From Paraphysomonas bandaiensis (lineage: Eukaryota > Protista > Chrysophyceae): a stretch of 64,000 bases of DNA. Every line of letters starts with the position of its first letter. The first letter of the stretch is position 1. The position numbers were made by a program, and so were the translations under genes. The stretch lies in contig CBFFRP010000363.1 of NCBI GenBank assembly GCA_965644295.1, positions 310,001-374,000 of the forward strand, given 5' to 3'. Shown here in pieces: positions 33,313-64,000 of the stretch. Below the pieces are notes generated by a model, which saw nothing but the letters and a program-made list of their open reading frames with translations, made no database searches and was not told the origin of the DNA.

Positions 33313-35217
33313 TTACGAATTGTTATCTTCCTTAGTAGCATATTTCGTATTATATTTCTTCAGGTTCTTTAGATGTACCATATATCGTCAGATCACATGT
33401 CTTAAAATACATTTCAGTTTCATGCATGTTGTAGTGTGCACATAAATACTTAATGGCTGCACCTCAGAATAGTTACTAAAAGTGAAACAATCAGATATCA
33501 AACCAAAAAAAGAGAAAAAATGATAGTTTTTTAGTTATTTAAGTGTCATACCTATATTTCACCATTCAAATCTATAAAAGTATATCTACCTATACAAGTA
33601 AGCGCATTTTCCGCAATAAACGTAGCGAACTTTATTGTGTCGTGGCCTACAACTATATGCAGGCCTACAACACAACATACGTGGAAATATCATCCATGAG
33701 CTTCTGCAGATGTTCCAAGAGCGGAGTTGACGAGAACCTCAGGTCTTCCATCTGTAATAAGACAAATAAGGAAAGCTATAATTTCACCGCAAATACACAA
33801 CTCATGCGGAAGACATTATAATATCTTCGTATTTAAGCAAACAATACATGTACGACAGCATTTATAAAATCAATGGCAACTTTTACCTGTCTAAATATGC
33901 ACACTTTAGTAGCCATGATAAGATTATCTTTGTACATTCCGCAAGCAATGCTTATAGTATCTTGGAACGACATTTCCATTTTTTCAGTTTGAAATACAAT
34001 GTCGGATGCGTGTTTGATAGCGTTCACCTAAAACAATAACCGTAAACAAGTGCAATATCACTCATATGCAGCATTAAAATTCCAGCTAACTTATCATTCA
34101 AAATTTAGCATACACTCTAGATAAATAACATAAGGCAATATAGTTCAAAGGCTTTTCGCCTCGTACTCACATCGCCATCCCTATCGAGTTCATCGGCAAG
34201 TTGTTTCACAGCTTCAACAAGGTTCGCTACTTGTTGAGCAGCTGTAGTCCTGAGTCTCTCTACTTTGCTTACTGAAGTCGATATCATGCGCTTGATATCA
34301 GAAGATAGTTCAGATATCGCAGATGCGTATGCGATGTCCATCTGCGACACACATCGTAAAATAGCTCGTATCACGAAAATTCAGGAACAGGAAAAATATT
34401 TCAGCATTTATATACTTGTAAATACCTGGTCATGCACGTACTTGAGCAGTGCTTCTTCTTCACTCTGCTGTTGCTGGCGTATACTTTCTTCCGCAGCTCG
34501 TCGGTAGTCTCCGTCCTCGTCCCATTCTCGTGCAGCAGCCTCCATAGCCTCGGCCCACTGCCGTTGAAAATCTAGCTCCGCGTTGTGCTACGCAATTAAA
34601 TGTTATATACAAACACAACCAGTACAATAGATATATCAATAAAAATACGTGGATGAGAACTTTTAAAGCATATCAGTAGGCAACAAGATAGTAACTGTCG
34701 TAGATAGGCATCAAACACATTCAAAATAGATTTAAGTTCCACAGCTTACACTCACTTCAACTTTCATAAGAGGTTCATCCGCAGCCGCTAATGCACTATC
34801 CTCTTGTTCTATAAAAAATTCTGTCCCCGTGTCCAGAACACGCGTGGCGGCTACATTTAATTCCTTCAGTCTCACGGTGTCGTACGTGCTTGGCAATTCT
34901 GACAGAGTTTCATTATCTTGTAAAATTGCACTACCAATACCCGAATACTCATCGCGTTGGCACAAATCTGCAATGCAGTGTTGAAAGGCCAAAAAAACAT
35001 CTGAAATCGCAGCAGTCTTTCGGTTCTCCATTTGAAGTTGCAGAGACTGTAACCGTTGATTGAGCTCGCGGTCGATTTTCTCAGCTGCTCCATCCTGCAA
35101 TTCTAGTAATATTTTCTCATGTTCCTCCCTTAAACGACCCCTCATATTGAGATATGCGGCAGAAAGAGAATTAGGATCTGGCACAGAGGCACTTGTCGGT
35201 GAACTCATCCTTTCCAT
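33313..35217 (-). CDS. Coiled-coil protein of unknown function, spliced (ends approximate)
   Basis: Helical exons MERMSSPTS...LREEHEKILLELQDG..., ...MDIAYASAISELSSDIKR... and ...NAIKHASDIVFQ... joined by GT-AG introns. The last plausible exon ends at TAA 33313. Confidence 0.6.
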
Positions 35218-35961
35218 CACGATAAATATATCTACGCTATGCACACAGTAAACGGAACAAGATAGCAGTCCATACCAGTCGCAATGACGAGTAGCGATCA
35301 GTTCCCTCAGTCGTATTCGACAAGCATTCCTTTTGTGTTGTGTTAAAACATACTCCTCGTTGATTAGATATGAGAGCTGCACCTGCATATGTGACCAGTG
35401 CACCCCGGAGTATACATCATCTGTATGCTTAATTTAATACTGCGGGGACAAAATTACAAAATACCAATTTTTACGATTTCAAGTACAAAATACCACCCAT
35501 TTTCTGTTACACAAAATACCGAGTAGAATACGGAATACGTACTTTTAGATTGGCCGTATTTGGTATTCCATATTATACCTACTTCTACATTGTTCCAGAT
35601 TGTTGGTGTGTACTCTGTACAGCAGTACATACCATACGGCATATCCACACCTCGGCTCGGTACAGTAAACTAGAAGTTAGTTCTTTTCCAAGATATACGG
35701 TACTCCAGGTACGATATACAATGCATTATGCAGACTGTGTTTCTCGGCAGCAATAAGAATACAGAAGTATCCGCCAAGTACACTTCACAATCGCCGTTCA
35801 CATGGTGCGAGACGGCCCAGACTTCTTTAAACACATCCACATACACAGCAGCTACTGCAGAGTGAGCAGTCTTCTATCTATATAAAGATTAGCTCTCAAT
35901 GCTGTGTAATTTCTAAGTAGAACTAGGATTAAAGTTATTTGTTTAAGCATATAGAGACCAT

Positions 35962-38900
35962 ATGAAAAAACAAACTCTACTTTATAGCTGTGTACTGGTA
36001 GTTATACTGCACATGGCATGTACGACTCCCACAGGTTTGATATAATATCGATAGCCACTTCCGTTAATTTTAAATCATGTTTTAGCACCGATGAAACGGG
36101 AGGATTCAGAGACCTCGTATGGTAGTGGTAGGAATCACAGCCCGCAGCTGTCCACAGAAGCTGCGACATTTAATCGTCAAAGTGCCACTCTTGATAACGA
36201 AATTGAAGTTTATAATGTAACTAGAAAAGTAGAATCTCAACGCATGCTCACATCGGGTAGGTGGACGCAGTGCTTACTACCCTCGCTTCATTTAAAGTAA
36301 CCGTTTCATGTCGTAGCTCTGGTTTCTGTAAATAGTTTGGCTGGATATGCCAGTGGTTTCTCTGACGGCATTGGTACCAATGCATTGTTTACAAACCCAA
36401 TTGGTATATCGTGGTCATCAGACGATTCATTCCTCGTGATTGGCGAACATGCAGCCCCCAGAATAAGGAAACTGCTGATGTCAACATATGAAGTTTCCAC
36501 TGTTGCAGGAAATGGCGGATCGGGAAGATCAGATGGGATCGGAACGAATGCAGGCTTCAATTCTATTTGGCACATTGCGCTATACCAGAATGATTCGGCG
36601 GTATTGGTATGTGAGACTGGAGCAGTACGTAAGGTTGTACTGTCCACCGGTTACGTGTCGACATTAGCTGTAATAGGTGGAAATGTCTTAAGAGGCGTTG
36701 CAGTATTTTCGATTGGAAGTTCTGCTATAATTGTGGATCTCTCTGACAATAAATTACGAAATTTTAGCATTGTGTCTCCGACGTTTACGACATTGGCCGG
36801 GTCGGGATCACTGGCGACTGTGGATGGTGTTGGTACCAATGCTGCGTTTGATGCTCCAAGTGGGGTATCACTCGCATCAGATGATTCTTTTGCCGTAGTT
36901 GTTGAGATTAGTGGTTATGTTCGAAAGTTTGTTATATCTACTGGAATGGTGACCACATTGGCTGGAGCTGATTCGATATCTGTAGTTGTGGATGGCATTG
37001 GGACAAATGCGAAATTTAGAAATCCCCAAGACGTAACTGTTTCTCCTGATAATTCTTTTGCCCTCATTACTAGCGAGTTAGCCTATAGAATACGCTATAT
37101 TCACTTACCAACAGCTTTTGTCACTTCTGTTATTGGCAATGGAAATGCGGGTTTTCAGGATGGCACCGGGACGACTGTAGAGTTGGGAGCTGTTTATGGG
37201 ATTAGTAGAATATCGGCCGATGGAAACTCCGTCGTATTCAACGATTATTATCATCATAGAGTAAGACAGATATCAGGTTTGAAGGCATACACGGCAGCCG
37301 TTGTCACGAATGCTCCCAGTTCATTACCAACTAGTGAACCGTCAGGTGAGCCGACTGGTCAACCGACCGGACAACCAACTTGGCAGCCAACAGGTGAACC
37401 AACTGGTCAACCAACGTGTTTACCCTCTGGTGAACCGACCGGTCAGCCAAGTGGGCAGCCAACTGGAGAACCTACTGGAATTCCAACTAGCAAACCGACC
37501 AGAGAACCAACAGGTCAACCGACCGGACAACCGACTGGACAGCCGACTGGTGAGCCAACTAGCCAACCGACTGGAAAACCAACCGGACAGCCAACTAGCC
37601 AACCGACTGGAGAACCAACAGGACAACCGACGAGGCAACCAACTAGTCAACCGACAGGTGAACCAACTGGAGAGCCGACAGGGTATCCAACTGGCCAACC
37701 GACTGGAGAACCAACAGGACAACCGACGGGGCAGCCAACATGCCAACCGACTGGTGAACCAACTGGAGAGCCAACAGGACAACCGACGAGGCAACCAACT
37801 AGTCAACCGACTGGAAAACCAACAGGACAACCGACAGGGCAGCCAACTAGCCACCCGACTGGAGAACCAACAGGACAACCGACAGGGCAGCCAACTAGCC
37901 AACCTACTGGTGAACCGACTGGAGAACCAACAGGACAACCGACGAGACTACCTACTAGTCAACCGACTGGAAAACCAACCGGACAGCCAACTAGCCATCC
38001 GACAGGGCAACCAACTGGGCAGCCGACAGGACAGCCAACTAGCCAACCGACTGGTGAACCAACTGGGCAGCCGACAGGACAACCAACTGGCCAACCGACT
38101 GGGCAACCAACTGGACAACCGACAGGGCAACCTAGTAGCCAACCGACTGGTGAACCATCCGGACAGCCGACAGGGCTACCAACTAGCCATCCGACTGGAG
38201 AACCAACTGGGCAACCGACAGGGCAACCTAGTAGCCAACCGACTGGAGAACCAACTGGGCAGCCGACAGGGGCACCAAGTAGCCATCCGACTGGAGAACC
38301 AACAGGACAGCCGACGGGGTATCCAACTGGAGAACCAACAGGGCAACCAACTGGCCAACCGACCGGTGAACCAACCGGACAGCCTTCTGGACTACCAACT
38401 GGCCAACCGACTGGAGAACCAACAGGGCTGCCGACAGGGCAGCCGTCAGGGCAACCAACGAGTGAGCCCTCGGGGAAACCGACAGGACTTCCAACTGGCG
38501 AGCCAACGAGTGATCCTTCGGGGGAACCTACAGGACTTCCAACTGTTCAACCAACTGGTCAGCCAACTGGCCAACCGACGAGTGTCCCCAGTGGGCAGCC
38601 TACTGGGCAGCCAACTAGTCAACCAACTGGTAAACCTAGTGGACTGCCATCAGGACAACCAACTGGCCAACCAACAGGTGCACCTTCTGGTGAGCCAAGT
38701 GGACAGCCAAGCTGTCATCCCACCGGAAAACCTTCCGCTGATCCAACTGGGCAGCCAACAGGTCAGCCTACTGGCGAGCCGACTGGAGACCCATCGGGTT
38801 TACCATCATCATCCCCATCATGCAAGCCTAGCAGTAGCCCTACAAATCGACCTACGAAAAGGCCTACTTCCCACCCTACTGTGAGACCTACCCAGGCGCC

Positions 38901-41900
38901 AGTGCCAACAGTAACGAGGTACCCCACTCTATGGCCAACCTATAGTATGCAGCCCACATCAGTACCTAGCAATGCGCCGACTTTTTCAGTTGTAACCATG
39001 TGGAAGTATGATATCGAGAAGTATATCGAGGAGTTGATAAGTATATCAGATGCTCAGACGCCTCATCGTGAGGTGGTAAAAGATTTAATTGTGGACGGTG
39101 GGCGTGTGTATGGTGGATGTGCTGAATGGTCAGTGTTTGTTGAGGACACCTTACCTACGACATTGATATCGTATGTGCCAACTGAATTGGCTGTTGCTGC
39201 TACTAAGAGCCCATCCAGCCCTATCAGTGAATATGCTATACACTGTTCGGATGACGGCATTCCAATGGCACTAATGAATCATTTGAGTACGTTATCATCA
39301 ACTGCATTAGACAGTGATATGTATTACTCTTATCTCTGCGGAATGTACAATTGGACTGTTGGAAAGTGTATTGGAGCCCCCAGTGCTTTTTTGTGTATCA
39401 ATTGTTCCCAACCGTGCTCCGCCGAGAAACGTGCTGATTACGAGTTATCTTGCCGCAATGCCGCACAAGACAACGACATGCGAGTACTGACTATAAATTT
39501 CAATGATGTATCTGTCGCACCTGCCATCAAATCTATTGCGGTGTCATTGAGACAGCAGTCATCACTGACTCTCTCGTACTCAGTTACAGAGGCCACTGGA
39601 TCAATTGTTTGTGCTGCCTATACCCCTCTCTTCGGAACACCTGAAACAGTCAGTTCACTTCTGCTCAGTGGAAGTTTGCAGGATATAGAATCTAGAATGG
39701 GGTCTTACAAGCTATCGAACCTGAAACCAGCAACGGTGTATTATCTGTACTGTGCAACATACTCAGCGTTAGGTGTTCCGTTAAGTTATTCTTCTATGCT
39801 GAATACGAAGTTATCCATCACAACTTCCTGTTGCCGGCCTGTTTATATAAAGCTGCAGCAGACATCCTTTTCAGATACTCAGGATTCAGCGAAAGCTGTG
39901 TTGGTATCGGTGGAATCTCTCCCTTACGAAAATGTAAATGTCAGTGTGAAATGCGTTAGCATGGCGGGAACTGAAGTGAATTTATTCTTGCCGTCTTCAC
40001 TAACGTTTTCACGAAATTCAAAGTTTAAGAGTGTGTACTTGTCTTACTTAAAATCCCCAGCTGGTGAATATACTATTCATACTTCATTGTCTGGCCCATC
40101 TTCAGATTCTTATGAAGTTGTATTTTCCAGTGGAAAGTTGTTAACAGTGGTGAATTCTGTTGATGAACCTCCTGTGCCCTCACTCACGTCTGCTGCATTT
40201 TCGGACGATGGTACTGCAATAGTTGTAACATTTAATTCTCCGACCAATAGAGGCTCCTACGTTAATGCGTTCATTTGCTCTGCAGTATTCGCAACGGATA
40301 GTTTCCCCATGAATAACTGTCTGTGGGACAGTGACTCCACAGCAAGGATATTCACAAGTGGTGATAACGGAGGAAGGGTTGGGGATGTACTTCACTTGAG
40401 AACGCGGCGTTATTCGGGCCAAGTGTTTGGGTACCACAAGTACAGCTTTGTCATTGTGCTCGTCGTGGAAGTACAGCTCTGCTGGAAATGTAACAGTCGG
40501 TGCTCCTGCAAACCCTGCGCCTCCTGTCGTGTCCATAATAGCGCCAAGTGTCATAGGACCCTGTGATTCTCTCACTCTAGATCTTTCAGGGTCGTCAGGT
40601 TCTGGTGGAAGGATTTTTGATTCGATCACCTTCACTGTGTCTACAACGGATTCAACAGTGGCACCACTACAGACATATTTGGACACCATAGACGAATTCA
40701 AATCTCTAGTTGTTATTTCACAGGATATCTTGAACCCGGGGTATATCTACAGTATATCTGTTGAGCTGTGCTCCTTCCTTGGTGTGTGCAGCATTGGATC
40801 ACACAACCTTGTTGTTTCAACTGCTGCGAATATTCCTATTGTGTCTATTTATAAACAGAAATTGGTTCATGTCAATCGTTTTTCTTCTCTGCGCATATCT
40901 GGTGGGGCATTTACATCCGCGTGTGACGGAAATCAAAACAAAGCGAACTTGAAATTTTCTTGGAGTATAACTACATCCAACAAGGTGCCATTGAGTCTCA
41001 CATCTACTTCTTCGGATAGAACAGTATTTCAGCTTCCCGCTTATTCTTTGGAGGTTGGGAATTTATACTCTGTGACCCTGACAGTGAAGCATTTGGTTTC
41101 ATTAAAATCATCAAGCTCCACAGTATCAGTATCCGTGTTACAGGGCGATGTTGTGGCACAAATTTCTGGTTCGTCGGAACGTGGTTTGCAGGAAGATGGA
41201 TCGATTCTGGTGGACGCGTCTTCCAGCTATGATGAGGACAGCAACGAAGGGATATATTACCTGCAATTTGATTTTTCATGCACCCAGACTTTTCCAACAA
41301 TTGTAGCATCCTGTCTTCTGGATATGGATCCTGTATCCGCATCAAGCATTGAACTATCGGTGCCGAGAAATAGCACCCTACTTGGCACAGTGCACGAGGT
41401 CACGGTGTCAGTCGAGCATATTTATGACAAGAGAACTTCTTTTACATCCATTCTAGTTGAGATATTGCCATCGTTAGCACCAGTGATGTCTCTTCAGGCA
41501 GTTGGATCGACACGTATCAATCCTTCGAAGAAGTTGAAACTAGTTGCGCAAATAGAGACCACCTCGACCACTAATATTGTTTGGAGTTTGAATGACCCAT
41601 CTATTGATCTAAGTGCAGTGTCACTCAGTGATACATCTAGAGCATTCACAGTACTTCCTCACAGCATTGGAATAAAGCATGTATTTAGTTTCAGTTTAGT
41701 CGTTTCTCCTAATGTACTTTCCGAGGACTCCACTTTTGTATTTAGCTTACATGGCACAGCTGACACTGGGCACACCGCTAGCGCAAAGATATTGATATCT
41801 ACGAACTCCCCTCCACACCCTGGCGAATACATTGTGTCGCCGCATAATGGCACCAAGTTGGAAACTGAATTCATGTGTCAGGCTTTGCAGTGGGAAGACA

Positions 41901-44900
41901 TTGATATACCAATAACCTACGAGTTTTCGTATATATCTGCAACAGGAGATTTTGTTGTTCAGCGGGCCAGACAGGAGCTGTCCTACATGCTGGCAAAGTT
42001 TCCTGCTGGGTTACAGCAGAACGAATACAACCTTGTTACCCAGTTGCAGGTGTTCGATAAATTTGATGCTAAGCGCACTGTTTTTGTGCCAGTTCTTGTA
42101 TTTGAGGGAGCCGAGGTGACTCCACAGAGTGCGCAGGAATATTTCATTTCTGCCGTTGTTAACGCAAGTGGGTTCGCAGGTAGAACAGCTTTGAATATTT
42201 TATACGACTATAATCTTTTGTGTAATTAGACGAGTTGAAGCAAGCAGCAGCTCTAACATCATCCATAATCAACGCCGTGAATTGTACCGCTGCACCGAAC
42301 TGTACACAGCTGAGCCAGAAAGCAGTGTAGTGTGTATCAGTCCACATGTGGAGAGTGCTTGGAGGGCTACCTTGGAGAAAGTGGACACAAGAACTCTCTC
42401 TGTGTTGGACGAATAGATGATTCTGATGTGACTTCCAGGCAACTGACAGTGTGGAATCATATGTTCTCTGGCGGCACAGAATGTTCATTGAATGAGCATT
42501 GTAATAGCGCCCTGTGGGAAGTGTGTGTTGATGGGGTCTGTAGAATTGCTCACGCAAAGATGCACAACAGATGTTCTGGACATGGGTGTGCTCGTTTCTT
42601 TCCACACATTGATTGAGTCACGTTGTTGCCAGGAGCATGCGGTGACTGGAATTCTGGTAAGGGCAGTCTGTGTATGTGAGAGTGGCTAACGGCTCGAGTT
42701 GTGAATATGCATCATATGATTTTGGATTACTTCAAAGTATTCGACATGGATATCGCTATTGCCATCGTGAAACATATCTCTGAATTGAAGACCCACTCCT
42801 GAAGTGTTTGTTTACCCGGTTGAATGGGCTGTCTACAGTTGCAGCTGATTCCAACAACAAGGAAGAACGAAGGCATTATTAGCGTCAATGGCATATTGAG
42901 TTCATCCAATAAGGCTTCCTATTTGGGATTACAGTTTGAGGAGACAACAAGTACAGCGGCAGTATACTCGACCTAGTTCTGTCCACGAGTAACGACGTTG
43001 CTTTTGGATTGTTGCAGGTGTATGGGGAGTACATATCAGCGGACATGACTGATGGACAGAATCCGATAGAAGTGATCAATCAAGCATTCAGACTTGTGTC
43101 AGTATCGCTTGACGGACTGAGTAATAGTTCTGTGAGCTCTCCTATGTCATCTATTGAGAAAGCACTCAATACTTCTGCGCATGTTGCACACATTCCAACC
43201 ACAAGCACTGACGAGTCTTTAAAAGTCGTGGTTGATTGAAGGACCAGGTCTGAGCAATGGAACCTATCTATCTATGCCGTTTGGTCTGAACTTCGATAAG
43301 TCTCCCTGTGCTGATAACTCTGATTCGTCGTGTGGATATTACCGTGGTACTACAATATGAGTTTCCGGTGAATACTGGTGAACGGTTCACGACCCATCAC
43401 TGTTGATTTTTGAGTGTAAACGCGGCTTAGAGGCAGAGCACAACTACACTTGTCCCTTGAGTGAAGTCTTAAGTGTATCGTGTAATGGATCTGTAGCCGG
43501 TGTGTGGAGTAAGGCGTGTCCAGTATATCAACCTGGTGTAATCTGTGAATCTATTGGAACATCTACTAGTTCGTGTGAGTATCGTTCAGTATACCAGCAA
43601 CAATGTCAACTTGTCAATGTAGCTTACCCTCGAATTCGAACCAACGCAGGCTGCAGGAAAGTGGAGATAATGACGATGCCGAAAATAACGCAGCTATATC
43701 ACTAAATTTTGTAGCAGCTAGTGAGTCAGTACTGGTGGAATTTGTGAAGTACATGGAAAAGTGCTTCGGATCTCAGTACCAGTGATACGAAGAACAACTG
43801 GCGAGTACTCGTGACAATTGGATCTATCGGGGTATGTGGTGTCTCTTTTATGGTTTGGGGATGGTGGACAGATACAACCTCTGCAGATGAGGAAAAGCGG
43901 GCAGAGGAACAGAGAAAAAAGGATGAGAAAGCGGAAAAAGGTGTAGAAAACTCTATCAAGAAGAGATTAAATCGTCAGAATGTGTCCTGGGAGCGAGTGT
44001 TGCGTCCACAGAAGAGTATTTCACCCGTAAAGCCACAATCAATCAAAGCTATGTCTGCTAGAGATCGAACGAAATCTTTTGTTACTCTTCCTGAGGAGAA
44101 GACGGTGGAAGCTGCCCTTCCGGCTGTGCTGAAGCCTTTTCCGCTGTGGAAGAAGTACATCGTCGAAGCAAGAGTATACCACAGGTACCTGGATTTTTAT
44201 TGCTTCATGCTGACACTAATGGGGTATATATTTACGTAGATGGGCGGGAGTTATATTACACACATCATCAAGATTTCCGCGCCCACTACGCGTGCTGTCT
44301 CTGATGATGAATATATTAATAATGCTTTTTATTGAAGCAATGACATATAATATTGCTGATCCTAATGATGGTTCTTGTGAGACGTATAACACAGAGAGTG
44401 AGTGTCTGACTGAGATGTCGTCTCTTGCTGATCATGAACCCAAGTGTTACTGGGACAATGATAACTCATCCTGTCACTTCCGAGAAATAGATGGGGAATT
44501 CTACCGAGTTGTTACTGTCGCTGTTATTGCTGCGGTGGTTGGAACTCCCTGTGCTTTGGCTATCGAGGCTCTAATATCGAATGTTCTTGCTGCACGCACT
44601 ATAGACGAGAGTGAAATTAAAAAGAGTTTGCAACGTCAGCTTAATTGTAACAAATCACCCATTGTTAGACCTACGAAAGTAGCTAACGAACACCCTTCAG
44701 CAGCAAAGAAAAGTGTACAGCTTTTGCAAATTATTGAAGAAGCTTACGGCTGCACGATAGATGAGGACTATCAGAGTCTCCGAAATGAGCTTCAAAATCA
44801 TCGCCAGAGCTTATCGCCCGGAGAGCGTAATGAGTTTGACAGTAAGTTAACACTTTTAAAATTAAAAACTGTAATGATGTGGATGTAGAAATTTGGGGCC

Positions 44901-47900
44901 TTGACTTGTCAGACATTGACTATGGCGCATCATACAAATGCTGGAAAATTTTGTCGCGGAGAATCTTTCCTCATTCCAATATCGGTATTTTTGCTATATT
45001 TCACTCTAGAAATCGTGAATAACACATATGTGTTACAGATGACAGTGAATCTCTGTTGTTGGCAGAGTTACAGAGCGTTCGGGATTGCTTCGCGAAAGAG
45101 TGTGAGTTCTTTGACAATGCAGCCCTGTCGGATGAGGAAAAGAATTCTCGACTGCTTTTTTTGTTCATCAAAGACCTTATGGATGGTGTAAATGGTATTT
45201 TACTTCATGTAGCGATCTGTATATATATGCGTAACTGCTGTTCAGGTCAAATTATGGATGCGAAGGATCGACGTGATCACGAAATAAGAAAAGCAGTTAC
45301 TCTTACTACGAAGCTATATGCGTGGACTGCGATTGGGTTAATGGCATCAGGGATGCTGTTTTATCTTTTTCTCTTTGCAATTCGACAGACTGAACAAAGA
45401 CAAGCGGCTTGGCTACAGTCGTTTATTGTCTGGCTATTTTTTGAGATACTGATCGTAAGTTCTTTTCTAGTGCTGGTTCAGCATATCGTCATTCCATCAC
45501 TGGTGATGGAAGACGTTCGCAAGGTGAAGAAAAGAGTTGTAAATGATATAATTTCTTTCAAATCGAACGCAAAGAATCGAGCATACAGCGTATTACCTCG
45601 ACGTAGAAATACTGCATCCACTCGGAGAGAATCGGCAACAAGTGTTCAGAAATTAAATGCTGCCAAGTATCTTTATGTGTCGTGGCGAATCGCAAAGTTT
45701 TACCCCAACTTACCGCAGAGTTCCATGGTGACACGGTTTTCAACTCCGTGGCCTAAGAGAGCGATAACGAGAAAGTTCAAGGGTGTGTCAAAGGCCTATA
45801 GCAAGAAGTTTTCGTTTGTGAATCAAGCAGTTAGTCGGGTAGTATTATATCTCCTGGTGAGTGTTGTGCAACTTCCACCTGCTGCTCAAGATACAGTAGT
45901 TCAAGTTATTCTTTCTTCCGGAATTGGATATGTTATCATGCTCCTGGTTCAACTATATGAAGTACATCCCATTCTTGTATTGGTTCCCGTTGTCACGGTT
46001 TTTATTGTGGCACACTTTCTATTCAGCTCTAATAAGCACTCGGATCTGTCTTTACTGAACTCGGCATCTTCAATGTCATTGAACAGTCGCCGTACGAGCG
46101 TCAAAGAAAACGATATTAGAGATACGAAAGACCTTTCAGTCGGTGCACACAGTGTTTTTCCAATAATGCAAGTATCTGGGCCAGAGAGTCATATGGAAAC
46201 ACTCAAAGTGTGTTCAGTGGAAACGGATGGAACTGCATCAACAGTGCTGCGTGATATGCGCAACAGCTTGAGCGATATTCTCCCTGTAAGTTCGGCGCTA
46301 TGTAAATCAGCTTCTCCGATCTCTAAATCGTGCCCTTTGGGAAGCTCGAAACCATGTCGTCGAGCATGTGCAGATTATGATGAAGGAGAGGAAGCCGATA
46401 ATGAGGAAGGGTGGGGCGATGTATCCGATGATAGCTGGGGAGATATGAAGGAAGTACGTCGTCCAACGAGAACACATTCTATTCATTCGCAAATTGATGA
46501 ATTGGAAGATCTTCAAGTCATGTTGAACGAACATTTCGGATGTTTCTTAAATGACAAAACTGAAGCGGGGATAGTTTCAGTGGGTGTAGATAAGTTTTTA
46601 GTAGAAGAGGAAGATGTTCCAAACGCTGGGGAGGCCTCAGTGGACGAAATATTTCAAATTCTTGCCGAGACATTTTCCCTCGATTATTCCGTGCTGTCAC
46701 CGAGTTCGAAATCTCCTGTAAAATCCTCGCACGACGACAGCAGTCCGTCTGACCGAAGTTGTGCTTCACCTGAGGTGCACACGGAAGTTCTGGAGGACAT
46801 TGGAGCGGTGCAGTTTAGGGATGATGAGAGTACTTTGTCTCGAACCCCTGATAACAGTGTCTCTCTTTTTCATCGCAATGTAGTACAGGGGAATGCTTTG
46901 AAACACATGGATGGTGTTAAGTCTCTTGAACTTATTGCAATCGAGGAGGCGCGGCGCCATATTTCAGAGCTCGAAAACCAGTATGCAATCCTAGAAGCGA
47001 AATATAGGAAAGAATTAGCTTGTAAAGTAAGCAGTAATGAGGCCCAAAGCCTTGTGGGTTCGATATTAGCGTCCACGGTTCCTGCGATTGCAAAATCTCA
47101 AGTTTTAAAGGAAATAAGAGACAGCTTGTCGGTGGGACTAGCGAATGGTATCATTGCAATCGCAGCAGCCCACGTAGCCACAGAAGAAGGTAGTGTGCGG
47201 AAAACAAAGGAGGAACGTGAGCAAGCTGAGTTGGAGATTCTTAGACGTTCGACTAGAGGAAAATGTGTACATGATTGCGTGGATGCGTGGATAGAGCGAG
47301 GCAAGGCAAAGCATGTACTTCGTGCTCTGTGTGCTGAAAAGTCGGAGAAATTCGTAAAGGCGCTTGTAGTGAAGGAAGTTTTGAAGTTGTCTGGGGTCGA
47401 TGAGCCGTTCAAAAGGTTTGTACCGAGGGCAACTCATGATGAAAATATGTATAATGACACATCTGGATGGAGGAGTAGATATGAAGCACTCAGTGGCATG
47501 GCGGTCAAAGAGTATGAGCAAACACAACGAATTATAAAGCAGTTACAGCACCGATGTTTGACACTGGAGAGGCAGTTCTATGAGGGTAGAAATGAAGGTC
47601 GTAATGAGTCAGATACTGCCAGTTTGCCCCAGTCCATCGGAGGGGATATTGAAAACTTTTTAGAACGGGATATATCTAGTTATTTCTTCAGTTCTGATGA
47701 TTTTAGTTTTGGTGAACACCCTGTGGAACAGTTTGATGAAAGCTGTGGGGATGTGCATACGGAGACACCAATTGGAGAGGATAGTGATGTAGTGAAACAT
47801 AGCAAAGCTTCCATGCCCGAGAATGTATTGGATATCGATTCTCTGGAAGATATCATGCCTGAAGTGATACAGCTCCTAAACCAAGTCACGGCCAAGTCTG

Positions 47901-47920
47901 AGCAGAAGGAAAATGATTGA
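35962..47920 (+). pseudogene. Polycystin-1/REJ-like giant receptor, copy 1; frameshifted as assembled (pseudogene or consensus errors)
   Basis: Same exons as copy 2, but with a +1 indel near 40403 and many indels at 42310-43760. Confidence 0.7.
37310..38900 (+). repeat. 12-bp coding tandem repeat (P-T/S-x-Q/E mucin-like stalk), copy 1
   Basis: [12 protein letters not shown] units, with a 156-bp higher-order spacing (ggacaaccgacgag at 37621, 37777, 37933). Confidence 0.95.
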
Positions 47921-47927
47921 GATCAGT

Positions 47928-48890
47928 GCTTAATATTTTATAGGAATTTTCTGTTTGGTAATTATGGTTACGATTTTCAGTTTCTTCTTTCGATTTGGGC
48001 TCTGGGTCCAGAACTTCGAGGGTCTGTTGCCAATATACAGAGTATGCGACTTCACAGAGAGTTGGATTTTTGTCGGTGAATATTAGCCTTACGTATGCGA
48101 AGTGTTGTTGATAATGTAGGGTTGTTTGTGTGCAGTTTGAGTGTTGACTCACCCTTTGTCATACATTGTAATTAACGATACTTATAAAGAGTAACCGCGG
48201 TTGTGGTTGATTTAGGCAATGTTAGTTTCTGACAACACTAAATATTTTTGTGTAGTTGTTTGTGATGCATGATAGTGACTTGCAATTGCATTCTGATTGT
48301 GGTTTATGATCAGTGTGTATACAGAAAAGTTACAGAACACTTTTTCTCCTCTGATCTCCGCCAGTACTCTCATTATTGAATATCTGATTATTATTCTTGA
48401 GCTATTCGTAACTAGGACTCTAACGTAAATATCTAATTTGAATGTAACTATATATGCTAGGTATCTAATGATCAAATGCCTGATTTCAGAATACTCTCAT
48501 GGGTGGCATATTCGCCGCGTGTACTGCTGCATATAGGCTGTTGAAGTACTGTACACAGTCCACTCTCCCCACCATGATTGCTGAACGCCCCAATATTAGA
48601 TCTAATCCCATCTTCCCTGATGTCTTCACTTGCATCCACCTGGGTATTGGGATCTTTTTCAACAAACCATATGCATGTTGAGCGACGTTTCTGCTCATAG
48701 GATATCATCGACACTTCTCCTCCAATTGCCTTTGTAGCTCACTCATATACTCCTTCCCACTACATTGCACAATCGACAGAATATCATATATCCACTGGTT
48801 GCTGCTTTCTCTCTCGCCTTGATTTATACCTCTGCTAGTGATCCTCTTCCACACACTATACCTTTCCTGTCCCCTCCTAACTATTCTCCC
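47928..48890 (-). other. Unique spacer between the duplicated units, containing a decayed ORF 3' end (TE-like)
   Basis: A minus-strand frame GRIVRRGQERYSVWKR...EEKCR*YPMSRNVAQH...MPPMRVF* begins at the duplication breakpoint. The sequence is absent after unit 2. Confidence 0.4.
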
Positions 48891-50026
48891 AAATTCCAGC
48901 TAACTTATCATTCAAAATTTAGCATACACTCTAGATAAATAATATAAGGCAATATAGCTCACAGGCTTTTCGCCTCGTACTCACATCGCCATCCCTATCG
49001 AGTTCATCGGCTAGTTGTTTCACAGCTTCAACAAGGTTCGCTACTTGTTGAGCAGCTGTAGTCCTGAGTCTCTCTACTTTGCTTACTGAAGTCGATATCA
49101 TGCGCTTGATATCAGAAGCTAGTTCAGATATCGCAGATGCGTATGCGATGTCCATCTGCGACACATCGTAAAATAGCTCGTATCACGAAAATTCAGGAAC
49201 AGGAAAAATATTTCAGCATTTATATACTTGTAAATACCTGGTCATGCACGTACTTGAGCACTGCTTCTTCTTCACTCTGCTGTTGCTGGCGTATACTTTC
49301 TTCCGCAGCTCGTCGGTAGTCTCCGTCCTCGTCCCATTCTCGTGCAGCAGCCTCCATAGCCTCGGCCCACTGCCGTTGAAAATCTAGCTCCGCGTTGTGC
49401 TACGCAATTAAATGTTATATACAAACACACCAGTACAATAGATATATCAATAAAAATACGTGGATGAGAACTTTTAAAGCATATCAGTAGGCAACAAGAT
49501 AGTCACTGTCGTAGATAGGCATCAAACACACACAATAGATTTAAGTTCCACAGCTTACACTCACTTCAACTTTCATAAGAGGTTCATCCGCAGCCGCTAA
49601 TGCACTATCCTCTTGTTCCATAAAAAATTCTGTCCCCGTGTCCAGAACACGCGTGGCGGCTACATTTAATTCCTTCAGTCTCACGGTGTCGTACGTGCTT
49701 GGCAATTCTGACAGAGTTTCATTATCTTGTAAAATTGCACTACCAATACCCGAATACTCATCGCGTTGGCACAAATCTGCAATGCAGTGTTGAAATGCCA
49801 AAAAAACATCTGAAATCGCAGCAGTCTTTCGGTTCTCCATTTGAAGTTGCAGCGACTGTAACCGTTGATTGAGCTCGCGGTCGATTTTCTCAGCTGCTCC
49901 ATCCTGCAATTCTTGTAATATTTTCTCATGTTCCTCCCTTAAACGACCCCTCATATTGAGATATGCGGCAGAAAGAGAATTAGGATCTGGCACAGAGGCA
50001 CTTGTCGGTGAACTCATCCTTTCCAT
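48891..50026 (-). pseudogene. 3'-truncated duplicate of the coiled-coil gene
   Basis: The first exons match 34077-35217. Exons equivalent to 33313-34030 are absent because the breakpoint lies in an intron. Confidence 0.8.
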
Positions 50027-50722
50027 CACGATAAATATATCTACGCTATGCACACAGTAAACGGAACAAGATAGCAGTCCATACCAGTCGCAATGACGAG
50101 TAGCGATCAGTTCCCTCAGTCGTATTCGACAAGCATTCCTTTTGTGTTGTGTTAAAACACTCCACGTTGATTAGATATGAGAGCTGCACATGCCAAGGTG
50201 ACCAGTGCTTAAAATTACAAAATACCAATTTTTACGATTTCAAGTACAAAATACCACCCATTTTCTGTTACACAAAATACCGAGTAGAATACGGAATACG
50301 TACTTTTAGATTGGCCGTATTTGGTATTCCATATTATACCTACTTCTACATTGTTCCAGATTGTTGGTGTGTACTCTGTACAGCAGTACATACCATACGG
50401 CATATCCACACCTCGGCTCGGTACAGTAAACTAGAAGTTAGTTCTTTTCCAAGATATACGGTACTCCAGGTACGATATACAATGCATTATGCAGACTGTG
50501 TTTCTCGGCAGCAATAAGAATACAGAAGTATCCGCCAAGTACACTTCACAATCGCCGTTCACATGGTGCGAGACGGCCCAGACTTCTTTAAACACATCCA
50601 CATACACAGCAGCTACTGCAGAGTGAGCAGTCTTCTATCTATATAAAGATTAGCTCTCAATGCTGTGCAATTTCTAAGTAGAACTAGGATTAAAGTTATT
50701 TGTTTAAGCATATAGAGACCAT

Positions 50723-53700
50723 ATGAAAAAACAAACTCTACTTTATAGCTGTGTACTGGTAGTTATACTGCACATGGCATGTACGACTCCCACAGGTTTG
50801 ATATAATATCGATAGCCACTTCCGTTAATTTTAAATCATGTTTTAGCACCGATGAAACGGGAGGATTCAGAGACCTCGTATGGTAGTGGTAGGAATCACA
50901 GCCCGCAGCTGTCCACAGAAGCTGCGACATTTAATCGTCAAAGTGCCACTCTTGATAACGAAATTGAAGTTTATAATGTAACTAGAAAAGTAGAATCTCA
51001 ACGCATGCTCACATCGGGTAGGTGGACGCAGTGCTTACTACCCTCGCTTCATTTAAAAGTAACCGTTTCATGTCGTAGCTCTGGTTTCTGTAAATAGTTT
51101 GGCTGGATATACCAATGGTTTCTCTGACGGCATTGGTACCAATGCATTGTTTACATCCCCAGCTGGTATATCGTGGTCATCAGACGATTCATTCCTCGTG
51201 ATTGGCGAACATTCAGCCCCCAGAATAAGGAAACTGTTGATGTCAACATGGGAAGTTTCCACTGTTGCAGGAAATGGCGGATTGGGAAGATCGGATGGGA
51301 CCGGAACGAATGCAGGCTTCAGTTATATTTGGCACATTGCGCTATACCAGAATGATTTGGCGGTATTGGTATGTGAGACTGGAGCAGTACGAAAGGTTGT
51401 ACTGTCCACCGGTTATGTGTCGACATTAACGACAACTGGAACTGTCTTAAGAGGCGTTGCAGTATTTTCGATTGGAAGTTCTGCTATAATTGTGGATCAC
51501 TCTGACAATAAATTACGAAATTTTAGCATTGTGTCACCGACGTTTACGACATTGGCCGGGTCGGGATCACTGGCGACTGTGGATGGTGTTGGTACCAATG
51601 CTGCGTTTGATGCTCCAAGTGGGGTATCACTCGCATCAGATGATTCTTTTGCCGTAGTTGTTGAGATTAGTGGTTATGTTCGAAAGCTTGTTATATCTAC
51701 TGGAATGGTGACCACATTGGCTGGAGCTGATTCGATATCTGTAGTTGTGGATGGCATTGGGACAAATGCGAAATTTAGAAATCCCCAAGACGTAACAGTT
51801 TCTCCTGATAATTCTTTTGCCCTCATTACTAGCGAGTTAGCCTATAGAATACGCTATATTCACTTACCAACAGCTTCTGTCACTTCTGTTATTGGCAATG
51901 GAAATACGAGTTTTCAGGATGGCACCGGGACGACTGTAGAGTTGGGAGCTGTTTATGGGATTAGTAGAATATCGGCCGATGGAGACTCCGTCTTGTTCAA
52001 CGATTTTTCTCATCATAGAGTAAGACAGATATCAGGTTTGAATGCATATACGGCAGCCGTTGTCACGAATGCTCCCAGCGCATTACCAACTAGTGAACCG
52101 TCAGGTGAGCCGACTGGTCGACCGACCGGACAACCAACTTGGCAGCCAACAGGTGAACCAACTGGTCAACCAACGTGTGACCCCTCTGGCGCACCGACTG
52201 GGCAGCCAAGTGGGCAGCCGACTGGAAAGCCTACGGGTGAGCCTACTGGAACTCCAACTGATCAACCAACCGGTGAACCAACAGGGCAGCCGACCGGACA
52301 GCCGACTGGTGAGCCAACGAGTAAACCGTCAGGGCATCCGACTGGAGAACCAACTGGGCAGCCAACAGGTGAACCAACTGGTCAACCAACGTGTGACCCC
52401 TCTGGCGCACCGACTGGTCAGCCAAGTGGGCAGCCGACTGGAAAGCCTACGGGTGAGCCTACTGGAACTCCAACTGACCAACCAACCGGTGAACCAACAG
52501 GGCAGCCGACCGGACAGCCGACTGGTGAGCCAACGAGTAAACCGTCAGAGCATCCGACTGGAGAACCAACTGGGCAGCCAACAGGTGAACCAACTGGTCA
52601 ACCAACGTGTGACCCCTCTGGTGAACCGACCGGTCAGCCAAGTGGGCAGCCGACTGGAGAACCTACTGAAGTTCCAACTAGCAAACCAACCGATGAACCA
52701 ACAGGTCAACCGACCGGGCAACCAACTAGTCATCCGACTGGAAAGCCAACCGGACAGCCAACTAGCCAACCGACTGGAGAACCAACTGGCCAACCGACCG
52801 GTGAACCAACAGGACAGCCGACAGGGCAACCATCTGGCCAACCGACTGGTGAACCAACTGGGCAGCCGACAGGGTATCCAACTAGCCATCCGACTGGAGA
52901 ACCAACAGGACAACCGACAGGACAGCCGACATGGTATCCAACTAGCCATCCGACAGGGCAACCAACTGGCCAACCGACCGGTGAACCAACTGGAGAGCCT
53001 ACTGGACAACCGACGGGGCAACCAACTAGCCAACCGACCGGTGAACCATCCGGACAGCCGACAGGGCTACCAAGTAGCCATCCGACTGGAGAACCAACAG
53101 GACAACCGACCGGGTATCCAACTGGAGAACCAACAGGACAACCGACTGGACAGCCGACATGGTATCCAACTAGCCATCCGACAGGGCAACCAACTGGCCA
53201 ACCGACCGGTGAACCAACTGGAGAGCCTACTGGACAACCGACGGGGCAACCAACTAGCCAACCGACCGGTGAACCATCCGGACAGCCGACAGGGCTACCA
53301 AGTAGCCATCCGACTGGAGAACCAACAGGACAACCGACCGGGTATCCAACTGGAGAACCAACAGGACAACCGACTGGACAGCCGACATGGTATCCAACTA
53401 GCCATCCGACAGGGCAACCAACTGGCCAACCGACCGGTGAACCAACTGGAGAGCCTACTGGACAACCGACGGGGCAACCAACTAGCCAACCGACCGGTGA
53501 ACCATCCGGACAGCCGACAGGGCTACCAAGTAGCCACCCGACTGGAGAACCAACAGGACAACCGACAGGGTATCCAACTGGCCAACCGACTGGAGAACCA
53601 AGTAGCCAACCGACTGGAGAACCAACTGGACAACCGACAGGGCAACCAAGTAGCCAACCGACTGGAGTACCAACAGGGCGGCCGACAGGGCATCCAACTA

Positions 53701-56700
53701 GCCATCCGACTGGAGAACCAACAGGACAACCGACAGGACAGCCGACAGGGTATCCAACTGGAGAACCAACAGGGCAACCAACTGGCCAACCGACCGGTGA
53801 ACCAACCGGACAGCCTTCTGGACTACCAACTGGCCAACCGACTGGAGAACCAACAGGGCTGCCGACAGGGCAGCCGTCAGGGCAACCAACGAGTGAGCCC
53901 TCGGGGAAGCCGACAGGACTTCCAACTGGCGAGCCAACGAGTTATCCTTCGGGGGAACCTACAGGACTTCCAACTGGTCAACCAACTGGTCAGCCAACTG
54001 GCCAACCGACGAGTGTCCCCAGTGGGCAGCCTACTGGGCAGCCAACTAGTCAACCAACTGGTAAACCTAGTGGACTGCCATCAGGACAACCAACTGGCCA
54101 ACCAACAGGTGCACCTTCTGGTGAGCCAAGTGGACAGCCAAGCTGTCATCCCACCGGAAAACCTTCCGCTGATCCAACTGGGCAGCCAACAGGTCAGCCT
54201 ACTGGCGAGCCGACTGGAGACCCATCGGGTTTACCATCATCATCCCCATCATGCAAGCCTAGCAGTAGCCCTACAAATCGACCTACGAAAAGGCCTACTT
54301 CCCACCCTACTGTGAGGCCTACCCAGGCGCCAGTGCCAACAGTAACGAGGTACCCCACTCTATGGCCAACCTATAGTATGCAGCCCACATCAGTACCTAG
54401 CAATGCGCCGACTTTTTCAGTTGTAACCATGTGGAAGTATGATATCGAGAAGTATATCGAGGAGTTGATAAGTACATCAGATGCTCAGACGCCTCATCGT
54501 GAGGTGGTAAAAGATTTAATTGTGGGCGGTGGGCGTGTGTATGGTGGATGTGCTGAATGGTCAGTGTTTGTTGAGGACACCTTACCTACGACATTGATAT
54601 CGTATGTGCCAACTGAGTTGGCTGTTGCTGCTACTAAGAGCCCATCCAGCCCTATCAGTGAATATGCTATACACTGTTCGGATGACGGCATTCCAATGGC
54701 ACTAATGAATCATTTGAGTACGTTATCATCAACTGCATTAGACAGTGATATGTATTACTCTTATCGCTGCGGGATGTACAATTGGACTGTTGGAAAGTGT
54801 ATTGGAGCCCCCAGTGCTTTTTTGTGTATCAATTGTTCCCAACCGTGCTCCGCCGAGAAACGTGCTGATTACGAGTTATCTTGCCGCAATGCCGCACAAG
54901 ACAACGACATGCGAGTACTGACTATAAATTTCAATGATGTATCTGTCGCACCTGCTATCAAATCTATTGCGGTGTCATTGAGACAGCAGTCATCACTGAC
55001 TCTCTCGTACTCAGTTACAGAGGCCACTGGATCAATTGTTTGTGCTGCCTATACCCCTCTCTTCGGAACACCTGAAACAGTCAGTTCACTTCTGCTCAGT
55101 GGAAGTTTGCAGGATATAGAATCTAGAATGGGGTCTTACAAGCTATCGAACCTGAAACCAGCAACGGTGTATTATCTGTACTGTGCAACATACTCAGCGT
55201 TAGGTGTTCCGTTAAGTTATTCTTCTATGCTGAATACGAAGTTATCCATCACAACTTCCTGTTGCCGGCCTGTTTATATAAAGCTGCAGCAGACATCCTT
55301 TTCAGATACTCAGGATTCAGCGAAAGCTGTGTTGGTATCGGTGGAATCTCTCCCTTACGAAAATGTAAATGTCAGTGTGAAATGCGTTAGCATGGCGGGA
55401 ACTGAAGTGAATTTATTCTTGCCGTCTTCACTAACGTTTTCACGAAATTCAAAGTTTAAGAGTGTGTACTTGTCTTACTTAAAATCCCCAGCTGGTGAAT
55501 ATACTATTCATACTTCATTGTCTGGCCCATCTTCAGATTCTTATGAAGTTGTATTTTCCAGTGGAAAGTTGTTAACAGTGGTGAATTCTGTTGATGAACC
55601 TCCTGTGCCCTCACTCACGTCTGCTGCATTTTCGGACGATGGTACTGCAATAGTTGTAACATTTAATTCTCCGACCAATAGAGGCTCCTACGTTAATGCG
55701 TTCATTTGCTCTGCAGTATTCGCAACGGATAGTTTCCCCATGAATAACTGTCTGTGGGACAGTGACTCCACAGCAAGGATATTCACAAGTGGTGATAACG
55801 GAGGAAGGGTTGGGGATGTACTTCACTTGAGAAGCGGCGTTATTCGGGCCAAGTGTTTGGGTACCACAAGTACAGCTTTGTCATTGTGCTCGTCGTGGAA
55901 GTACAGCTCTGCTGGAAATGTAACAGTCGGTGCTCCTGCAAACCCTGCGCCTCCTGTCGTGTCCATAATAGCGCCAAGTGTCATAGGACCCTGTGATTCT
56001 CTCACTCTAGATCTTTCAGGGTCGTCAGGTTCTGGTGGAAGGATTTTTGATTCGATCACCTTCACTGTGTCTACAACGGATTCAACAGTGGCACCACTAC
56101 AGACATATTTGGACACCATAGACGAATTCAAATCTCTAGTTGTTATTTCACAGGATATCTTGAACCCGGGGTATATCTACAGTATATCTGTTGAGCTGTG
56201 CTCCTTCCTTGGTGTGTGCAGCATTGGATCACACAACTTTGTTGTTTCAACTGCTGCGAATATTCCTATTGTGTCTATTTATAAACAGAAATTGGTTCAT
56301 GTCAATCGTTTTTCTTCTCTGCGCATATCTGGTGGGGCATTTACATCCGCGTGTGACGGTAATCAAAACAAAGCGAACTTGAAATTTTCTTGGAGTATAA
56401 CTACATCCAACAAGGTGCCATTGAGTCTCACATCTACTTCTTCGGATAGAACAGTATTTCAGCTTCCCGCTTATTCTTTGGAGGTTGGGAATTTATACTC
56501 TGTGACCCTGACAGTGAAGCATTTGGTTTCATTAAAATCATCAAGCTCCACAGTATCGGTATCCGTGTTACAGGGCGATGTTGTGGCACAAATTTCTGGT
56601 TCGTCGGAACGTGGTTTGCAGGAAGATGGATCGATTCTGGTGGACGCGTCATCCAGCTATGATGAGGACAGCAACGAAGGGATATATTACCTGCAATTTG

Positions 56701-62700: not shown

Positions 62701-63355
62701 CGTGGATGCGTGGATAGAGCGAGGCAAGGCAAAGCATGTACTTCGTGCTCTGTGTGCTGAAAAGTCGGAGAAATTCGTAAAGGCGCTTGTAGTGAAGGAA
62801 GTTTTGAAGTTGTCTGGGGTCGATGAGCCGTTCAAAAGGTTTGTACCGAGGGCAACTGATGATGAAAATATATATAATGACACATCTGGATGGAGGAGTA
62901 GATATGAAGCACTCAGTGGCATGGCAGTCAAAGAGTATGAGCAAACACAACGAATTATAAAGCAGTTACAGCACCGATGTTTGACACTGGAGAGGCAGTT
63001 CTATGAGGGTAGAAATGAAGGTCGTAATGAGTCAGATACTGCCAGTTTGCCCCAGTCTATCGGAGGGGATATTGAAGACGTATTAGAACGGGATATAAAT
63101 AGTTATTTCTTCAGTTCTGATGATTTTAGTTTTGGTGAACACCCTGTGGAACAGTTTGATGAAAGCTGTGGGGATGTTCATACGGAGACACCAATTGGAG
63201 AGGATAGTGATGTGGTGAAACATAGTAAAGCTTCCATGCCCGAGAAGCAACAGTATAATGTATTGGATAGTGATTCTCTGGAAGATATCATGCCTGAAGT
63301 GATACAGCGGCTAAACCAAGTCACGGCCAAGTCTGAGCAGAAGGAAAATGATTGA
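50723..63355 (+). CDS. Polycystin-1/REJ-like giant surface receptor (~4000 aa), copy 2, intact: signal peptide, NHL beta-propeller, PT stalk, Cys-rich/Ig-like region, REJ, EGF-like, GAIN/GPS-like region, multiple TM helices, long cytoplasmic tail
   Basis: Signal exon [20 protein letters not shown]; NHL repeats TLAG....DGIGTNA.F..P; REJ motifs [31 protein letters not shown] and [13 protein letters not shown]; [22 protein letters not shown]; GPS-like [15 protein letters not shown]; hydrophobic segments. GT-AG introns (e.g. 57610-57659) join the ORFs. Confidence 0.85.
52070..54330 (+). repeat. 12-bp coding tandem repeat stalk, copy 2, with 216-bp and 228-bp higher-order repeats
   Basis: gtgtgacccctctgg at 52175, 52391 and 52607; atggtatccaactagccatcc at 52931, 53159 and 53387. 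Confidence 0.95.
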
Positions 63356-64000
63356 GATCAGTAGGATAAGCACAACTTATTTTATAGGAATATTTATACA
63401 TATGCGCTATACGTTCTCATTCGTGGTTTTTCATATTAAATTGCGATATTTCGATTTTTACTTATGGTAACTGTTTGTACTGCACAAGAGCTACCCAACT
63501 GTGTTTTTTAGTTTAAGTTAGAACATTGTGGAAGAAATGAAGTTTAATACTGATATTATGTTCAGCATATTCCAACTTTGTATCAAGTGTTGTTTCTGGA
63601 CATATCATATCGCTCACTCATTTCCAAATATCACATGTAGCGCAGATATCACATAATGGAATTCTCAAGCGTACCATAGCCAAGACAAATGCCATCATAA
63701 TGCTAACTTGTAAAAATGAAATTCACATCACGAATCACTGCTCCACGAAAGGTTTACTATATATATGTGGATATATTGTGGAAAGTATTTCTATTATGAT
63801 TAAAGAGCCTTAATAGTTCATTTTTTCTTCATGTTTATAAATCGAGTTAAATTTTCTTTGATTTGATAGTTGTGCGTGTGTTTACATCAGCAATGATTCA
63901 ATTTATCATTCATTGTCATGCACTAAGTCACTACAAGACTGCAAGATCTATTTTCACATCAAGAGCCTCGGAAAAAAGAGAACTGGTAACTGGAGAGTGG

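Follow-up and report, generated by a model that had tools for sequence, protein, structure and literature searches.

We analyzed a 64,000-nucleotide stretch of contig CBFFRP010000363.1 (positions 310,001 to 374,000 of the forward strand), which we call the window throughout and on which all coordinates are given unless another contig is named. The window holds a 14.8-kb unit that is present as two tandem copies, A and B, each with one large gene for a candidate surface receptor, as delimited by self-BLAST and MAFFT alignments. In both genes, a short N-terminal exon is followed by a six-bladed NHL-type propeller, which a Pro-Thr stalk and a Cys-containing region join to an REJ domain; beyond this domain come a Cys-rich juxtamembrane region, several transmembrane helices, and a long cytoplasmic tail. 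The two copies are near-identical over most of the unit and diverge in the propeller, where the amino acid replacements concentrate, by the strand topology of a predicted model, on one face of the fold. The two units lie as follows.

34077–48890, forward strand: tandem unit A, including its 3′ spacer (47928–48890)
48891–64000, forward strand: tandem unit B, continuing past the end of the window to about window 65247

The junctions between the two units are clean. The spacer downstream of copy A (47928–48890, 963 bp) has a 97% identical homologue at window 64300–65247, after copy B, from which it follows that copy B holds an insertion of ~940 bp relative to A (63363–64299), between the gene end and the spacer. 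Protein features were read and searched open frame by open frame, and the coordinates below delimit these separate frames, not a spliced gene model. The paralogue C288, found elsewhere in the same genome, served as the third sequence in the exon alignments.

36091–36256, forward strand: upstream exon of copy A, followed by a phase-1 intron of ~60 nt (about 36257–36316; three-way alignment with C288)
50852–51017, forward strand: upstream exon of copy B, followed by the phase-1 intron 51018–51078 (three-way alignment with C288)
36337–37311, forward strand: six-bladed NHL-type beta-propeller of copy A, 325 codons (translation aligned to B; fold taken from the B model)
51099–52070, forward strand: six-bladed NHL-type beta-propeller of copy B, 324 codons (AlphaFold2 [AF2] model and Foldseek)
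37312–38900, forward strand: Pro-Thr-rich stalk of copy A, in 12-nt xPTG units with higher-order periods of 48, 96, and 144 nt (translation, repeat analysis)
52071–54300, forward strand: Pro-Thr stalk of copy B, with 216-nt (x3.5) and 228-nt (x3.5–4.3) arrays at 87–95% identity (translation, repeat analysis)
40940–42088, forward strand: REJ domain of copy A (PF02010, 135 bits, own-genome search)
56370–57518, forward strand: REJ domain of copy B (Pfam PF02010, 133 bits, E = 1.5e-38)
57665–59662, forward strand: Cys-rich and possibly GAIN-like region of copy B, up to the first transmembrane helix (translation, family alignment)
59715–63355, forward strand: further exons of copy B with transmembrane helices and the long cytoplasmic tail, in the open frames 59715–60311 and 60479–63355 (translation; no Pfam family)

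The intron donor (G|GTAGGT) and acceptor are kept in C288, as is the upstream exon. Since this exon has no signal peptide and no ATG that is conserved in C288, there are probably more exons 5′ of it. The AF2 model of the copy B propeller has a predicted local distance difference test score (pLDDT) of 94.6 and a predicted template modeling (TM) score of 0.92, with 22 strands arranged in six blades. Its best solved match in Foldseek is the NHL domain of SOQ1 (7djj; TM score 0.84, E = 1e-17, root mean square deviation 2.4 Å), and NHLRC2 (6g7w), teneurin-like, and TRIM71 structures also match (0.70–0.81 to teneurin-like and TRIM71). The motif of the known NHL propellers (SOQ1, NHLRC2, teneurin, TRIM71/Brat), G-x-x-G...DG-x-G-T-x-A-x-F-x-x-P, is present in A and B, whereas sequence identity to these propellers is 14–26% and an extracellular head of an REJ receptor is not among the matched solved structures. 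Pfam reports only Str_synth on the propeller (PF03088, of the same clan as NHL; 27.2 bits against a cut-off of 25) and leaves the NHL profile PF01436 itself unreported; nearly all word-search homologues of the B propeller, at 25–37% identity, carry PF01436.

The stalk measures ~530 amino acids in A and ~745 in B (~215 longer in B), and here the copies differ by rearrangement, a difference that the original prediction had left aside. The higher-order arrays of the B stalk (52122–53872; 216 nt x3.5 at 87% and 228 nt x3.5–4.3 at 89–95%) are young and have no counterpart in copy A, which indicates that stalk length changes by unequal exchange. Altogether, these features confirm a propeller tip on a Pro-Thr stalk over an REJ-containing membrane base, much as an earlier reading of the sequence alone (the original prediction) had proposed when it described a propeller held out on a mucin-like stalk. 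Its further label of a "PKD1-like chassis" fared less well: from the domains recognized, the REJ domain appears to be the single element behind it, since PLAT and PKD_channel have no Pfam match in any downstream open frame (frames searched singly, Pfam only, E up to 5). The juxtamembrane region has a conserved C-x-C before the transmembrane segment with no H-L-T/S after it, and a loop of ~25 amino acids intervenes (five-sequence family alignment). GPS likewise has no Pfam match, and an AF2 prediction of the juxtamembrane region from the five-sequence alignment reaches a pLDDT of only 35.

Between the propellers of A (36337–37311) and B (51099–52070), we found 39 substitutions, amounting to 25 replacements over ~324 amino acids, and one in-frame 3-bp indel. 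These numbers agree with the ~25 replacements and one codon indel in ~320 amino acids of the original prediction, and every change that it named is present (AS>TN, N.I>S.A, Y>W, NS>SY, AVIGGN>TTT-GT, AG>TS, YY>FS). Its statement that few changes are silent does not hold, since 10 of the 39 substitutions are synonymous, the share expected under neutrality. By the Nei-Gojobori method (NG86), synonymous divergence (dS) is 0.042 and nonsynonymous divergence (dN) is 0.041, for a ratio of 0.99. The differences fall largely into two tracts, whose blades (6, 1, 2, and 3) adjoin in the closed ring.

36349–36683, forward strand: diverged tract 1 of copy A, blades 1 to 3 (within the enclosing 36337–36700: 24 substitutions in 364 bp, 6.6%, plus the 3-bp indel)
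37118–37321, forward strand: diverged tract 2 of copy A, blade 6 and linker (within the enclosing 37111–37330: 12 substitutions in 220 bp, 5.5%)

The first difference between the copies is at 36349, 12 bp into the propeller frame, and the last is at 37361, so that the divergence follows the domain (36337–37311) and stops at the stalk. Within the tracts, the changes form tight clusters, with 11 changed columns in 17 bp (36667–36683) and four in 8 bp (36394–36401). Many changes had been described as multi-base, which the counts bear out: two base changes fall in the same codon in seven cases, where 1.5 would be expected (P = 0.00025), and the excess persists when the two tracts are taken alone (P = 0.0013). 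Equivalent positions of the repeated motif are changed more than once, namely the two residues inside the G-x-x-G turn that precedes DG and those on either side of P in F-x-x-P-x-G. The propeller differences include no frameshift, their sole indel is in frame, and they are non-random on the fold; they are not error-like. Adenine-specific mutagenesis of the retroelement type was ruled out, because the changes between A and B have no base specificity.

The rest of the gene contrasts with the propeller. In the ~1085 codons after the stalk, there are six replacements and 15 silent changes (the original prediction gave about six residues in ~1050), and the ratio of nonsynonymous to synonymous changes (N:S) is 29:10 in the NHL part versus 6:15 in the post-stalk/REJ part (Fisher p = 0.0009). 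Likewise, the upstream noncoding DNA is almost identical, as had been noted. Substitution density varies along the unit as follows.

First 1.3 kb of the unit: 1.1–1.4%
Upstream of the propeller, 35505–36336: 0.12% (one substitution and one indel column in 832 bp)
Propeller blades 1 to 3: 6.6%
Propeller blades 3 to 5: 1.0%
Propeller blade 6 and linker: 5.5%
Post-stalk and REJ parts: 0.4–0.8% (synonymous 1.9%)
Transmembrane region, 3.45 kb: 0.03%
3′ end of the unit: 2.4%

Silent divergence is thus about zero upstream and in the transmembrane region, ~2% in the REJ part, and ~4% in the propeller. The synonymous changes in the NHL part (10/247) exceed the upstream changes (1/832; Fisher p = 3e-6), those in the REJ part (15/779) exceed those of the transmembrane region (1/3450; Fisher p = 1e-10), and the propeller dS of 0.042 exceeds the 0.0126 of the pooled rest of the gene (Poisson p = 0.0015). 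Such heterogeneity at silent sites goes beyond what selection on new point mutations alone can explain; therefore, the tracts differ in age, and the pair is a mosaic. The simplest account is that the copies homogenized each other over most of the unit, by gene conversion or unequal exchange, and that the ends of the propeller escaped. The patchwork gene conversion of the original prediction is upheld in this respect, but the assembly (62.6 Mb in 669 contigs) holds no third donor: when the genome was searched at the DNA level with the A and the B propeller, only A, B, and C288 (66% identical) matched, and no short exact match to a donor turned up at E up to 10.

To describe where the replacements lie on the fold, we took as the "top" face the D-to-A and B-to-C loops, which lie on the same face by propeller topology; the strands come from the DSSP string of the model, not from its coordinates. 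Replacements affect 16 of the 123 top-loop residues and 8 of the 189 others (p = 0.008), which places the variable sites on one propeller face at the level of strand topology, as had been predicted. The top loops have 18 nonsynonymous and 2 synonymous differences (omega ~3.0), compared with 10 and 7 in the remainder (~0.5), and this N:S contrast is significant (p = 0.034). The loop positions concerned are residues 5–6, 20–22, 62–76, 111–116, 271–272, and 304–305 of A. The same positions appear changeable elsewhere in the family. Either of the two states is kept in C288 at 5 of the 25 positions that vary between A and B, against an overall propeller identity of ~50% (p = 0.0025), and 15 of 24 such positions also vary in an independent six-member subfamily of NHL-LRR (leucine-rich repeat) genes, where the background is 36% (p = 0.0075).

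The near-identity of the copies outside the propeller loops suggests two tips that are evolving to bind different partners. We regard diversifying selection on the binding face, which the original prediction had raised, as the best reading of these data; it is plausible and not demonstrated, and we would not put its chances above even. The one-face ratio of ~3.0 speaks for it, and several results weigh against it. Over the whole propeller, the dN/dS of 0.99 is indistinguishable from neutrality (binomial p = 0.60), and the ratio in the top loops does not significantly exceed neutrality when it is judged on silent sites of the propeller itself (p = 0.09 to 0.14). The top-loop excess becomes significant only with a wider silent reference (NHL plus REJ, p = 0.0015; all silent sites, p = 8e-6), which is unsafe because the unit is a mosaic of divergences. 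Moreover, constraint in a propeller is weakest in its surface loops, so that an enrichment of changes there needs no positive selection. In the NHL-LRR subfamily, ratios are generally high yet sub-neutral (0.4–0.6), the top-loop ratio exceeds 1 only in the three youngest pairs (1.1–1.3) and is 0.62 when all pairs are summed, and the top loops hold no excess of variable columns (38% vs 37%). To these must be added that the face was called by the strand topology of a model, that the comparison is one of two sequences, that a word search with B residues 1–324 gave no allele or orthologue above 37% identity, and that copy A may be dead. As such, the ratio over the whole domain, the nonsignificant top loops, and the NHL-LRR results make relaxed constraint in old tracts a serious rival, and the case for selection is suggestive.

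The state of copy A bears on this comparison. The original prediction had described two receptor copies and had missed that, by the alignments, A is broken.

40403, forward strand: first frame-breaking 1-bp insertion in copy A, ending the open frame at 40566 (alignment; derived on A relative to C288)
42317–43747, forward strand: degraded stretch of copy A with ~21 small indels and, in 42500–43000, 50 substitutions (alignment, C288 comparison)

With C288 as the outgroup, 39 of the 50 substitutions in 42500–43000 and nearly all of the indels are derived on A. This patch of 501 bp has sharp bounds and contains 50 substitutions along with 22 indel columns, and the commonest of its A-derived changes are A>G (14) and G>A (9); the copies are near-identical on both sides of it, and eight pure indels lie in the ~750 bp beyond 43000. 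The degraded stretch reflects either pseudogene decay or a clustered mutation event on the one hand, or local assembly noise on the other; in other parts of the assembly, open frames extend over as many as 7865 codons. A search of the genome itself found no donor for the patch, the only extra match being at C363:258211–258550, which has B's state at A's indels. This match is an isolated 340-bp fragment of the gene's juxtamembrane region (locus L037, 1501–1840), 98% identical, on the minus strand ~52 kb upstream of the window and with unrelated flanks. Unless it is locally misassembled, copy A may therefore have become a pseudogene or give rise to a truncated product.

The propeller differences have a different history. 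When polarized by C288, 10 changes are unique to A and 12 to B, the other 17 of the 39 having no assigned direction, and in the post-stalk/REJ part the A lineage has 2 nonsynonymous and 10 synonymous changes. The latter ratio indicates that A was under purifying selection while the divergence arose and, together with the even split in the propeller, that the propeller differences are not decay of A. Separately, the first part of each unit contains an open frame on the opposite strand (223 codons at window 34732–35403, minus strand, in A; a shorter one at 49541–50053 in B), which has no Pfam match.

The two copies belong to a large family. At least 90 REJ loci in the genome score above the Pfam cut-off, mostly in open frames of 2000–7800 codons and many of them in tandem (contigs C66, C475, C380, and C506), and at least a dozen contigs have both NHL and REJ matches. 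On the minus strand of contig C475 (G000:C475:64000–104000, loci L043–L047), three tandem REJ-receptor copies have in common a 7.8-kb base at 96.5–98% identity. Only the third has a Kelch six-blade propeller head in frame (PF24681, E = 1e-38), the other two having no head in that frame, and the repeat types of the stalks differ, one of them being PTSFPTDYPTSYPTV-like. On this conserved base, heads and stalks have been swapped. Between B and C288, amino acid identity is 50% in the propeller, 58% in the REJ domain, 69–72% in the other ectodomain and transmembrane parts, and 39% in the cytoplasmic tail. Taken together with the C475 swaps, these values mark the head with its stalk as the part of the family that changes, whether through point changes or by being replaced. 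The NHL-LRR subfamily consists of six paralogues, 82–97% identical, with an NHL propeller, a short Pro-Thr linker, and plant-type leucine-rich repeats (L008, L009, L010, L011, L023, and L025; contigs C516, C116, C247, C79, and C609). A further locus, L024 at the end of contig C516, is 100% identical to L025 (C609) over 2228 bp, which suggests overlapping contig ends.

Taken as a whole, the explanation that we prefer, and to which we give roughly equal chances of being right and wrong, is that A and B are genuine paralogues, arranged in tandem, of a surface-receptor gene in a silicifying stramenopile, homogenized by conversion, with one propeller face under selection for two specificities. Conversion or unequal exchange between the copies would keep most of the unit near-identical, and the stalk and base would be interchangeable between them. 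The propeller face with the D-to-A and B-to-C loops would bind the ligand, and selection for two specificities would both drive replacements and oppose homogenization at that face. Copy A would have gained its downstream frame-breaking lesions later, or else is locally misassembled. The genome has several silicon-transporter genes, from which the host was taken to be a silicifying phototroph, most likely a diatom, and the prey recognition suggested in the original prediction was judged unlikely.

The same mosaic could also be neutral. An older duplication would then have undergone repeated conversion, two propeller tracts would have escaped it, and the replacements would be drift in loose surface loops at a ratio of ~1. 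The whole-domain ratio of 0.99 is what this predicts, the propeller dS, raised over the rest of the gene and over the upstream DNA, fits older tracts, and the high but sub-neutral NHL-LRR ratios agree with it. However, the diverged region (36349–37361) closely matches the bounds of the propeller, next to 832 bp of virtually identical upstream DNA, the ratio of ~3 on one face contrasts with ~0.5 elsewhere, and codons hit twice are in excess even inside the tracts. We consider such a neutral origin possible but doubtful. The tight clusters of differences, such as the 11 columns in 17 bp at 36667–36683, would also be expected if short conversion events had brought the diverged tracts into one copy from a third, more distant paralogue or allele outside the assembly. 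Silent sites are indeed raised together with replacement sites, and the family is large and tandemly arrayed, with heads visibly swapped between other copies. Nevertheless, the searches of the genome returned no donor beyond A, B, and C288, which itself agrees with neither version at most variable sites, and the changes are evenly divided between the A and B lineages. Import of this kind is unlikely.

It is very improbable that the propeller differences arose by neutral decay of copy A as a pseudogene. The copy A frameshift at 40403, the ~21 further indels, and the patch with 10% divergence are almost all A-derived, and a ratio near 1 is expected under decay, but the A propeller has neither stop nor frameshift, its only indel is in frame, and its changes avoid the strands; the balance of A-unique and B-unique changes and the constraint on the A lineage after the stalk likewise run counter to decay. 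We give least credence of all to sequencing or assembly errors, or to two alleles misplaced in tandem. Near-identical 15-kb repeats are difficult to polish, and the 8 indel columns against 2 substitutions in A at 43001–43800 resemble a poor consensus. The propeller, on the other hand, has 39 substitutions and a single in-frame indel of 3 bp, all of them patterned by codon and fold, long open frames are intact elsewhere in the assembly, the two units meet at clean junctions, and a second spacer lies beyond copy B.

Known REJ receptors provide the closest comparison. An REJ receptor of the stramenopile Ectocarpus (Esi0130_0068, a male-gamete gene) has been reported under positive selection (PMC4700764), and the same source cites the lectin domains of sea-urchin suREJ and primate PKDREJ as cases with a fast-evolving distal part. 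For the sea urchin, a family of 10 SpREJ paralogues is reported (PMC1934368). In common with suREJ/SpREJ, PKDREJ, and Esi0130_0068, A and B are large membrane proteins with an REJ domain below a distal recognition part. They differ in that the distal module of suREJ/SpREJ is a C-type lectin, whereas A and B have an NHL-type propeller on a long Pro-Thr stalk, and in that positive selection on the ectodomain has been reported for the REJ systems, whereas for A and B it is only suggested by a comparison of two copies. The 10 SpREJ genes compare with at least 90 REJ loci in this genome. The likeness to the gamete receptors lies in the domains predicted from sequence, and A and B have no Pfam match to GPS, PLAT, or the polycystin channel. 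Concerted evolution with a ligand-contact part that is diverged or evolves faster is familiar from plant nucleotide-binding leucine-rich repeat (NLR) and LRR clusters, from the major histocompatibility complex, and from the pseudogene conversions of human PKD1. Those cases concern other lineages and domain sets, and A and B differ from them in having no identified donor tracts.

Mating, bacterial partners, parasites, and viruses all demand cell-surface recognition. To our knowledge, no cell-surface recognition repertoire has been described for diatoms, and a literature search found nothing on expansion of the REJ family in diatoms. A very large tandem family with an REJ base, in which near-identical neighbors differ in their heads, is a concrete candidate for such a repertoire. 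The A/B pair in turn supplies two natural heads, with 25 differing residues concentrated on one face and near-identical scaffolds, and is in this sense a minimal experiment. If the divergence proves neutral, the locus would still illustrate, in clean form, concerted evolution from which a region bounded by a domain has escaped. More tentatively, and with less confidence than we have in the account of the A/B pair itself, the 90 or more REJ-base genes may form a modular, fast-turnover repertoire for surface recognition, in which stalk/base cassettes homogenized by conversion carry exchangeable NHL, Kelch, or LRR heads that diversify under selection. A and B would then be two specificities in the course of splitting, and the family a protist counterpart of gamete-recognition, allorecognition, or immune receptors.

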